Shown: in pieces, positions 203-3,896 of the stretch
How the letters are laid out: the number at the start of each line of letters is the position of its first letter
Numbering within the stretch: position 1 is the first letter of the stretch
Assembly: GCA_943704425.1 (NCBI GenBank)
Contig: CALSCP010002781.1
Coordinates: 22,330 to 86,329, forward strand
DNA from: Ministeria vibrans ATCC 50519
Taxonomy: Eukaryota; Protista; Filasterea
DNA: 64,000 bases
Direction: 5' to 3'
Notes under the pieces: model-generated
Seen by the model: only the letters and a program-made list of their open reading frames with translations
What the model was told of the DNA's origin: nothing
Database searches by the model: none
Translations under genes and position numbers: made by a program

Positions 203-226
203 TTGGGGTTTACACGTGTCTTGCAG

Positions 227-388
227 GAACGGTCATCCGCTGTGTGGTCTCAACGCAGGGCATTACGGATGTGTACACCGATCAAAACGACCTTGTGCTT
301 GACGACTGTAACGCTAATGGTAACGTCCAATTGCAGACCAAGCAAGGCAGCTGTGTGTGTATGTGTGTGTGTGTGTGTATGTTTGTGT

Positions 389-428
<40 letters not shown>

Positions 429-1670
429 TTGTGTGTGTATGTGTGTGTGTGTGTGTGTGCGTGTGTGTGTCTGTTGTCTCACATGTTCTCTCTCTTTGAT
501 TGTGTTTGAAGGAATAACTCATGCCATTGAGCACACCCTGACTCAGGCTGAGGTGTGCAGTGGCACCGTTATGCGGAGTGAGATAGTCTACTACGAGCCT
601 GACGCCTGCAATGACGTGGTTCAACCCCAAACGGGAGTTGGAGAATGCGCTGTTGTGGGTTCTCCAAACGACCGAATCACCATGTCAAGTACGTGCGGAT
701 CCGGGAGATTGTCTCGTCATCTAGGTCACCCGCTTGGGCTCATGTTCTAAAACCCCTTTTCACAGGTGCCATTTTGGGATGCTTCCCCGAGGACGCTCTG
801 GTGACCATGGCAGATGACACTCTGCGACGCATGGACACGCTTGCCGTGGGCGACTCGGTGCGCTGCTTGCGTGGCGCAACGCTCTCCCACTGCCGTGTGA
901 CCACCTTCTTTGACCGGGTGCCATCCACCTCGTACAACTATGTGCAGCTCACAACGGAGACCACGACACAGATGCTGTGGATTTCGAAGCTTCATCTCAT
1001 GTATGTTGCTCCCGCCACCAACTCATCTGCGTGCCGTGAAGTGGACCTCGACGACACGCGGCTCAACCATGTGCCTCATGATGGTGCCTGCTTTACCTTT
1101 GCCGAACGTGTCTCCGTTGGTGATCGCGTTGCTCTCTCGGACGACCTTACGTCGTTGGTGATGGTGACGAGTGTGGGACACGCCACAAAGCGTGGCGTGT
1201 ACGCGCCCGTTGTCGATGGCGGTGGCCGCTTCTTTGTCAACGGAGTGCTGGTGAGCAGCGTACCCGACTGCCCGCTTGGCGAGGCGTTGTGTATGCTGGG
1301 CATGACACCGCTCACCCAGCAGCTAGACACACGTGCGACCGAGGACATCGTGGGCCTCCACCCGTATGTCAAGCAGTGGATCCCCCTGGGTCCTCTGCTG
1401 CGACGTCTCTCCAACGACAATTCCTTTAACGTGAAGCATCTGGGCGATGCACTTGAAGCGCGCAACGCTTCTGGCGACCTGTCGACCTTTGCGGATGTCG
1501 CGTCCCTTCTCGCCGTACACTTGCTCCTGCAGCTGCCCTCTGATAGCATCCTTGCTCGCCCCCTTGCGGCTGTGTCACGCACCCTCCTTGGTCTTTTGGG
1601 CGATCGCCTTTTGCTTGCCGAACCACTGTGGAAGCCTCTCCTCCCATTTCCTGGGAGTGTGTCTTTTTGA
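227..1670 (+). CDS. Hedgehog-related Hog (Hint + sterol-recognition region) protein with an N-terminal fasciclin-like segment; 5' end lies outside the window
   Basis: Exons about 227-319, 512-688 and 766-1670. G|CFP cleavage site (Cys codon 780-782), FFDR (Hh D46 equivalent), ISKLH (TxxH block), GVYAPVV..G.FFVNGVLVS, then GLHPY resembling the Hh SRR motif GIHWY. Confidence 0.85.
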
Positions 1671-2071
1671 TCAGGGGGAAACAAAAGCCAAAACCCGCAT
1701 ATAAAAAAATATAATAATAATAATAATAATAATTATTATTATTATACATAATACAATAATAGTACTTATTATTATTATTATAATTATTTTGGATAGTGTA
1801 TCAGTGGGTTTATAGGCTGACTTCGAGACATTCTCTTTTTTTTGTATATTGTTTCCATCTTGTTTTCACGTAGATCCGAGGACAACACTCTATTTCAATA
1901 ATACGATGTTGTATTCTTAATAATTCTTCTTCTATTTCATTAATAAAAGGGATGTATTCTTCTACTATTTCAGTATTCGGGGGAGTCTTCGCGCGGTGTG
2001 CATGAGGAGGGGGATCGTTCGAAGTGAGGGTTGGGTGGGAAGGTAGGATAGGGATAGAGCAAGGCCACTTC

Positions 2072-3813
2072 CTAGGAATAGTCTACGCTGCGAGTCTGCT
2101 GCTGCTGATGGTGCTGCGGCAGTGTTGGAGGAGATGATGGTGACCGCTGAAAAGCAGTACATTTCACTACTCGAGAGCCTTCGTCGTTGTCTTCATCATT
2201 GTCACTGTCAGCCAGGTTGCTATTGTTGCTACTGCTGCTCGTGTTGCTGGTGTTGGCAGCGGATGTGGTGGTGGTGTTGGCAGCGGATGTGGTGGTGGTG
2301 TTGGCAGCGGATGTGGTGGTGGTGTTGGCAGAGGATGTGGTGGTGGTAGTTGTGGTGTCCATGGGCATCATGCCTTCCTGCATCGTGTCGAGAAAGCTCA
2401 TTACCTCGTCATCAGGCGGCGGAAAGGTGAAATCAGACGACGGCGGTAACGGCAAGTTGGCGAGCACTGAATGTGTCTGAGGAGGTGAAGTCACCACTGA
2501 GCGCCTGTGCGCCGATCGAGAAACGTAAGGTCTGTTCTGCTCGTGTCCGTGGCGGTGCATACGTCGTCCGTATTCCAATAGGCGTTCGCGGCTGCGTTCG
2601 ATTTCGCGTTGGTGTTCGCGTTGGCGTTCGCGTTGGCGTTCGCGTTCGCGTTCGAGTTCGCGTATGAGTTCGCGTCGGCGTTCACGTTGGCGTTCGCGTT
2701 CGGGTTCGAGTTCGAGTTGGCGTTCGCGTTCGCGTTCGCGTTGGCGTTCGCGTTGGTATTCGCGGTCGAGCGCGTACTCTGCAAAGGTGGGTCTTAATTC
2801 TGACCTCAAGGTGTGAGATGTACGCTCGGGCGGTTCCATGTCCCACGTGTAATCAGCGTCAACAGGTCGAGGCACCGGCTGGAAGTCGCTGCGTGGAGGT
2901 TCGCGCGACGGTGGTGTCTCACTCTCACCGTCATCGATGCTCTCGTAGGGGCGTATACGCTGCATTGACTCGGCACGACGCCGGTGCATGTCGCGCTGCC
3001 TGATCCTCATGCGTTCCGCCTCGGCGTCTTCCTGCTCACGTGGCGGTGCTGTCTCACTCTCACCGTCATCAGCTAGTGTACGCCACATTGACTCGGCACG
3101 ACGACGCCTGATCATCATGAATTCCGCCAGGGCTGCGGCTTGCTCAGCATCATCGCTGGCGCCGTTGACGGATGCGTCGCCATCGGGTGGGTGGCTACTA
3201 CTGCCGTTGTATCGATGTGAAATACGCGAACGACGCAGGAGTAGACGATTTCGCGGGGCGGGTGCCTCCACCATCGTTCCAATTTTGAGAACAATGCCTG
3301 TCAGTCGTTCGCGCGCCGCCATGACATCTGCAGTGCGACCTTGAATCGTCGCCACCTGGCCCTCCATGGTGAGCGAGACACTCAGCTCGCCCTCGAGCGA
3401 CTTTGCCGCCCGCGACATTTCCTCGCCCTCGCCATTGAAAAAAAAACGACGCGCGGCGTCCCCATGCGATCCCACCGCAAAATCCAGCTGTGCTCGTGCA
3501 AGCTGCTGGTGTGGCAGTGTGCGCAGGGTCGATGGGACCGGTTCCGCCGGCGTGCCCGTGTCAAGCGAGAAATTTGCCGCCCGCCGAAGCTCGACCGTAT
3601 CCTCATCGTCTTCGTCGTCGACGGCGATGCTCTTGGATTCCACAAGGGCCTGGATCACTGCTCTCAGTGCAAAGTTGCTGATGACCTGGCAGGGGGCGCG
3701 ACACTGCGGACATTTGACGCGCAGAGACGACAAAGGACGCGCCGGATCAGCCGAGCCTGCAATGCCCCGGACACACTGCGCGCACGTCCCATGCCCGCAC
3801 GGGGAAAATATCA
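2072..3813 (-). CDS. RING-finger (C3HC4) protein with long Glu/Arg-rich and Thr-rich low-complexity regions; 5' end lost in gap
   Basis: PCGHGTCAQC...KCPQCR followed by NFALRAVIQ; acceptor tag at about 3814; N gap at 3887-3896 upstream. Confidence 0.75.
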
Positions 3814-3896
3814 CTACATTGGCAGGAAGAGAGCGAGAGGAGCGTCAGTGGCGTCGCAACAACGAACTTTTTTTTTTTTTTTTTTTNNNNNNNNNN

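Follow-up and report, generated by a model that had tools for sequence, protein, structure and literature searches.

A probable secreted Hedgehog-type autoprocessing precursor with lineage-specific cargo, and not a fasciclin fusion, in a non-animal genome

The variety of N-termini among the Hog proteins of protists has been on record since 2008 (Burglin 2008, PMC2362128). Hogs in which a signal peptide is followed by an unrelated, often Cys-containing N-terminus were described from alveolates, red algae, mosses, jakobids, cryptophytes, Glomeromycota and choanoflagellates, and in nematodes the cargo families occur both with and without a Hog (PMC2362128). In Drosophila Hedgehog established roles have been assigned to C258, D303, T326/H329, C400 and the SRR, D303 being the general-base Asp needed for sterol transfer (PMC9163320). 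The locus described here was initially read, from its sequence alone, as a fasciclin-like ectodomain fused to a complete Hog module, and a Hog system lacking the Hedge domain was thought to be undescribed. The latter opinion was wrong, as Hogs with unrelated N-termini have been described from many protists, fungi and nematodes (PMC2362128). Our analysis shows that positions 227-1670 very probably comprise exons 6-8, the 3′ part, of an expressed eight-exon gene for a secreted Hog-type autoprocessing precursor of 573 residues. The order within the precursor is signal peptide (residues 1-21), N1, N2, the predicted cleavage site Gly277/Cys278, the Hint domain and a helical, hydrophobic tail of 135 residues.

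The window, which is the whole stretch of 64,000 nucleotides analysed (G000:C2781:22330-86329), belongs to an assembly of 29.7 Mb in 2860 contigs. This is not an animal-sized genome, in agreement with the initial ascription of the locus to a non-animal cell. The three exons found in the window (Table 1) are bounded by canonical splice sites (cag/G at 226/227, G/gtaacg at 319/320, aag/G at 511/512, A/gtacgt at 688/689 and cag/G at 765/766). Translated one by one, they read ...DLVLDDCNAN (229-318), ITHAIEHTL...ITMS (514-687) and, within 768-1667, AILGCFPEDALV...FFDR...SKLH...GVYAP...GLHPY... up to the stop, with AILGCFP, TFFDR and ISKLHL in the last of the three. A Gly codon is split at the first junction (g319 and ga512-513) and a Ser codon at the second. 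Since the first intron is in frame and free of stops, the adjacency of NANG and ITH depended on a predicted splice; unspliced read-through would give a poly-(Cys-Val) insert.

That splicing does take place is seen in the transcript. A public, intron-less JGI contig of 1880 nt (L028) contains an ORF at 130-1851, with in-frame stops preceding its ATG on the upstream side. The ORF is the source of P0114, a JGI protein of 573 aa which was found in a profile search with alignment A1 and agrees with exon 8 at every residue of the latter. L028 matches each of the window exons (Table 1), and the exon model and its motifs are therefore real and transcribed. P0114 reads contiguously across the junctions (...CNANGITHAIEHTL...ITMSSAILGCFP...), which confirms both splice junctions of the sequence-only reading. 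The motifs that it had quoted (G/CFP, FFDR, SKLH, GVYAP and GLHPY) were all present. All analyses of the contiguous protein were carried out on the public record P0114/L028, while the window exons were translated separately.

Table 1. Positions of the gene, of the predicted features of its product and of related loci. Plain numbers refer to the window; other locations are given as contig of genome G000 and position.
Feature	Position	Strand	Details	Basis
Upstream exons	C821:1901-2434, C2:64-414, C428:402-692			Transcript mapping
Exon 6 of 8, coding	227..319	+	P0114 ~182-213, in N2; last base is the first of the split Gly codon	L028 676-770 vs window 226-320, 100%
Intron, 192 nt	320..511	+	Mainly (GT)n microsatellite	Missing from L028
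FAS1-H2-like motif, NANG/ITHAIEHTL	310..540	+	Spans the intron (310-319 and 512-540)	Motif-level likeness
Exon 7 of 8	512..688	+	Cys-containing end of N2 before the cleavage site	L028 769-948 vs window 511-690, 100%
Intron, 77 nt	689..765	+	gtacgt...cag	Missing from L028
Exon 8 of 8 (last)	766..1699	+	Coding to the TGA at 1668-1670; 3′ UTR to at least 1699	L028 944-1880 vs window 763-1699, 99.7%
Predicted autocleavage site, Gly277/Cys278	777..782	+	Codons gga tgc	Aligns with GCFP of human SHH (G197-C198)
Hint domain, P0114 278 to ~439	780..1265	+		Pfam PF01079, Foldseek, VIA, residue alignment
Asp322 (FFDR)	912-914	+	Within Hint	
Ser346 and His349 (S-K-L-H)	984-995	+	Within Hint	
SSV in place of SCY	1254-1262	+	Reads V-S-S-V-P-D-C, with a Cys four residues beyond	
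Helical Leu-rich tail, 135 residues (ARR/SRR-like)	1266..1667	+	Includes GLHPY, 1353-1367	
N1 loci	C2104, C1260 (two copies), C1906, C2124:4636-4848, C678, C2330, C654, C1345			
Cyclase-type and Patched-family genes	C2362:24843-25352; C1244:12325-12792			

L028 maps to the genome exon by exon with 97-100% identity, and the gene is therefore expressed with eight exons. The five exons upstream of the window were located on small unplaced contigs, two 5′ exons on C821, one on C2 and two on C428. They belong in a scaffold gap of 2291 N immediately upstream of the window (L009:7510-9800, window -2290 to 0), which has (CT)n on either side. Recovery of these exons, which the sequence-only reading had called for, also supplied the signal peptide, recognised by eye. 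In the 10 kb read upstream, the region beyond the gap held an unrelated SH3-domain gene and no exons of the Hog gene. This neighbour lies on the forward strand (L009:6562-6816; Pfam SH3_2, E 5e-6). Just before the gap, a short ORF (L009:7199-7297) begins in a favourable Kozak context and encodes what looks like a signal peptide (MAGAANAMKVILLLSHCFTLVHS). It was considered as the first exon and rejected, because the transcript starts on C821. On the other side, a minus-strand ORF of 580 codons (2072-3814) is convergent with the Hog gene. This ORF combines a RING-like, Cys-rich start (CGHGTCAQCV...CPQCR) with long Glu/Arg repeats and with TTTTSAAN repeated in tandem, and no Pfam family matched it significantly. 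Exon 8 alone, used as a query, matched only paralogue fragments, and it gave no matches in a scan of JGI metagenomes. A search for exact matches to the 341-aa ORF gave none.

Exon 8 matched the Pfam Hint family (PF01079) far beyond chance (E 2.2e-22; 80.1 bits with a cut-off of 29.7), and the outcome was the same with full-length P0114. The Vint match of exon 8 was marginal (E 0.18). In a phmmer comparison with PDB sequences, GCFP, TFFDR and ISKLHL were aligned with G197-C198, TFLDR and LTAAHL of human Sonic hedgehog. The Gly-Cys pair with the motif A nucleophile is present at the domain start (LG/CFP), and Cys278 is nearly invariant, being conserved at 90% or more in alignment A1. S-K-L-H is aligned with T-A-A-H, so that motif B (TxxH) is found with its His kept and with a conservative change of Thr to Ser. 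The general-base Asp (Drosophila D303) is also present, and the alignment of the paralogue subfamily (A4) shows no variation at D322, S346 or H349. The domain does not end in motif J (S-C-Y). Non-metazoan Hogs often have another residue for the Cys of this motif (PMC2362128), and the SSV found here does not therefore exclude Hog membership. Set against the residue roles in Drosophila Hedgehog (PMC9163320), P0114 retains the nucleophile (Cys), the general base (Asp) and the His of the active site. Its Hint domain also has a subfamily-specific insertion (AP.N.S..CR..E..DA.L.P.PH...C).

The AlphaFold2 model of the exon 8 protein, built with 61 aligned homologues, had a pLDDT of 85.9 and a pTM of 0.85. 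It consists of a beta Hint domain (exon residues 1-166) followed by six to seven helices (172-288). The top Foldseek match was the Drosophila Hedgehog autoprocessing domain (6tyy, 1at0; TMt 0.88, E 2e-10), and VIA-align superposed the model on 1at0 with Z 19.9 and an rmsd of 1.8 A over 141/145 residues. The Hog module of P0114 is thus genuinely of Hedgehog type and, as had been supposed, complete, in that Hint is followed by a C-terminal helical region.

In the same model the helices of the tail have a pLDDT of ~78-89, which drops to 64 past residue 280. Leu makes up 23% of the tail, the hydrophobicity of which is borderline (KD19 maximum 1.62). The tail is common to four paralogues besides P0114, with identities of 33-38% on C2104 and C1670 and 73% on C2175, and includes the conserved stretch PLTQxLDTRxxEDIxGxHP[YF]. 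Given this conservation, it is under selection. By analogy, the tail would hold the positional role of the Hedgehog SRR, that is, of an ‘ARR’. Its length is double that of the SRR, and the two are similar only in P-L and G-x-H-x-Y patches, too weakly to score, so that sterol specificity is a guess. The best ESM look-alike of the tail was a cluster of Hedgehog Hint C-termini, at 0.88, which is below the reliability threshold and serves as a lead only.

P0114 begins with a sequence (MPIMLRIRLLFIVALVSTAHA) that is, by eye, a typical signal peptide. The mature N region of 256 residues is 25% Ser and Thr, and has 12 Cys and one N-glycosylation sequon. Its first part, N1 (residues 29-147), aligned with the entire cargo domain of the paralogue P0003 (E 1e-12), and the alignment stopped exactly at the cleavage Cys of the paralogue. 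N1 is a lineage-specific, beta-rich domain that is also the cargo of two paralogous Hog proteins. The N1 family was found at about ten loci of the genome, among which, besides the P0114 gene, only those on C2104 and C2124 also had a Hint match in a six-frame Pfam scan. Most N1 loci were on contigs with no Hint match, and the C678 copy had an in-frame TAG. The second part, N2 (residues ~146-277), is Cys/Thr-rich and contains the H2-like motif. No paralogue of N2 was found in the genome, and its comparison with N1 ruled out an internal duplication (BLASTP E 4.4). Nothing related to the N region turned up among 5.8 billion proteins (within the length window) or among PDB sequences, and exon 7 had no matches in the ESM Atlas.

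Six Hint loci were detected by six-frame search of the genome, on C637, C2781, C2124, C32, C2104 and C1670. The Hogs on C2104 and C2124 carry a domain of ~115 residues of no known family. The C32 paralogue (L013, G000:C32:35721-39242) has thrombospondin type 1 repeats directly before GSCG/CF, and its Hint alignment reads LV--RRH, without the Asp of FxDR. A contig from Logan accession SRR23272272 (L027, 2194 nt), from a near-identical organism, spans a gap of 865 N upstream of the C2124 paralogue and has a signal-peptide-like exon (MQSILFNLLLVYLLIGCVSA) preceding the cargo domain of that paralogue. A partial duplicate of window 1172-1645, with 84% nucleotide identity, was found on the minus strand of C2175 (L002, G000:C2175:17357-17829), just downstream of an EGF-repeat transmembrane gene. 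The duplicate (L002; L026) has only the last Hint strands and the tail, and the N-terminal part of Hint was not detected there. Near its 3′ end, the genome copy is not read in the same frame as a near-identical ENA metagenome contig (P0001), so that the duplicate may be a decaying or tail-only copy.

By analogy with Hedgehog, Cys278 would attack the carbonyl of Gly277 in the secretory pathway and bring about an N-to-S acyl shift, in which His349 and Ser346 would assist. Asp322 may then activate a hydroxyl nucleophile, kept in place by the tail, for attack on the thioester. This nucleophile would most likely be a membrane sterol or other lipid alcohol, and otherwise water. The expected product is a freed N1-N2 fragment of 256 residues, possibly tagged with a lipid through an ester at its C-terminal Gly, and the cargo may act outside the cell. 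The changes from SCY (C400 in Hedgehog) to SSV and from Thr to Ser in TxxH count against a Hedgehog-like mechanism. The genome also encodes an oxidosqualene/squalene-cyclase-type protein and several Patched-family proteins of the RND/sterol-sensing type. These genes make the availability of sterol and of RND-type partners plausible, as context and not as evidence. It is doubtful that this lineage built its own modular system of cargo with or without a Hog, independently of nematodes, in which the tail might recognise an adduct other than cholesterol. Were this so, surface proteins of a unicellular eukaryote would receive their lipid or membrane tag by a new chemistry.

The initial proposal of a fasciclin (FAS1) adhesion domain as the ectodomain that the Hog would release is highly improbable. 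It arose from the likeness of an NGxxHxIxxxL motif to the FAS1 H2 motif, and locally this likeness holds: NGITHAIEHTL, which is of H2 type (NG-v-v-H-x-I-D-x-v-L), is present in the transcript-derived P0114, and NANGITHAIEHTL following L-V-L-D-D resembles the H2 end. Although a strict form of the pattern (NG[ILVT][ILVT]H.[ILV]) is rare, with no occurrence among the 128,000 residues of the six-frame translation of the window, the likeness is limited to one short motif. We built a FAS1 profile from the eight FAS1 domains of the same genome, which themselves score 134-166 bits. A segment of 61 residues round the motif scored 4.8 bits, equalled by 35 of 2000 shuffles, and HMMER placed it at profile positions 90-126, the correct register for the H2 end. 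Residues 22-277 as a whole reached only 1.7 bits, a score equalled by 244 of 2000 shuffles, and use of the profile on the exons one at a time, again with shuffles, had likewise led to rejection of FAS1. Pfam searches at E up to 10 with P0114, with the exons singly and with the unspliced ORF gave no match to Fasciclin (PF02469), and Hint was the only family matched by P0114. PDB sequences likewise gave no matches to the N region, and no H1 motif was visible in residues 90-200. The would-be FAS1 body of ~90 residues overlaps N1, which is homologous to the non-FAS1 cargo of the paralogues. The AlphaFold2 model of residues 22-277, of low confidence (pLDDT <35 for 154-273), has strands and coil and no helices, and would also speak against FAS1. 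Within the genome, C1730 was the sole contig with Fasciclin domains, and these lie far from any Hint. The partner domains among the 61 homologues scanned included HH_signal, AIG1, trypsin and cadherin-like domains, with no Fasciclin. Profile searches and modelling thus bore out the Hint half of the proposed fusion and not the FAS1 half. The H2-like motif is an isolated resemblance with no FAS1 domain around it, and the part that would be released is a lineage-specific domain.

Other explanations concern the state of the gene and the chemistry of its product. The gap immediately upstream and the truncated, tail-only duplicate on C2175 could suggest a dead or fragmentary copy, either a pseudogene or an assembly artefact. 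There is very little chance of this, as the transcript is intron-less with a complete ORF of 573 codons, every exon including the missing ones was matched, and the catalytic residues are intact. Inteins and BIL-type elements have the same fold as Hint and occur among the structural matches, and the domain could in principle splice or rearrange its flanks instead of acting as a Hog. The probability of this is negligible: the best Pfam family is the Hedgehog-type Hint, Intein_splicing was not found in the Pfam search, and both Foldseek and VIA placed the Hedgehog domain ahead of inteins, BIL and Vint (VIA Z at most 16.1 for inteins and BIL and 11.6 for Vint, against 19.9). Nor is there a C-terminal Asn with a nucleophile, or a C-extein, since only the helical tail and the stop codon follow VSSV. 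A more serious alternative, although still unlikely, is that the Hog cleaves by hydrolysis or with a nucleophile other than a sterol, and is a maturation protease that frees a soluble, untagged N1-N2. The loss of SCY and the strong departure of the tail from the Hedgehog SRR in length and sequence are consistent with it, and Burglin coined ‘ARR’ (adduct recognition region) precisely because the adduct was unknown for Hog domains outside Hedgehog (PMC2362128). However, the Asp that serves as general base for transesterification in Hedgehog is conserved and invariant in the subfamily, and a long hydrophobic tail selected in five paralogues is hard to explain with water as the nucleophile. We therefore prefer a Hedgehog-type precursor that would transfer its N1-N2 cargo to a sterol or other lipid alcohol.

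Compared with known systems, P0114 is an ordinary member of the protist Hog proteins. Like those described in PMC2362128 (from Cryptosporidium, Jakoba, red algae and mosses, and the choanoflagellate Hoglet), it has a signal peptide, a lineage-specific Cys-containing N-terminus free of known domains, Hint and a C-terminal region, and it shares with many of them the replacement of the motif J Cys. Database Hogs outside the organism are only distantly similar to it (best E 2e-13, 28% identity), and it is set apart by the subfamily insertion in Hint, the 135-residue tail and a cargo consisting of N1 and the orphan N2. It is like the animal HhC (Hint and SRR; 1at0, 6tyy, 7e2i) in fold, in G/CF, in the Asp of FxDR and in the His of xxH, and its G-x-H-x-Y patch is reminiscent of the HWY motif of the SRR. 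Unlike animal Hedgehog, it lacks the Hedge domain (HH_signal), has Ser in TxxH and SSV for SCY, and ends in a tail roughly double the SRR in length. The resemblance to Fasciclin/FAS1 (PF02469) is confined to 13-20 residues at the H2 end (D..x..NG-h-h-H-x-I-E-x-x-L), whereas the rest of the domain, a Pfam or profile match, the H1 motif and the helical half are missing. P0114 therefore reveals no new architecture with a known adhesion domain.

Points of modest interest are the insertion in Hint, the long conserved tail and the occurrence of the N1 family with and without a Hog. In the last respect N1 is like the nematode Warthog, Groundhog, Quahog and Ground-like families, being fused to a Hog in some copies and apparently free of one in others, as judged by the six-frame Pfam scan. 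The nematode cargo domains are unrelated to it, however, and the host of P0114 is unicellular with a small genome. The gene, known with its transcript, complete exon structure, intact catalytic residues and relatives in the genome, adds a further well-documented case of Hedgehog-type autoprocessing for the maturation of secreted proteins outside animals. With its invariant general-base Asp and long conserved tail, the subfamily is a reasonable substrate for asking what non-animal Hogs attach to their cargo.
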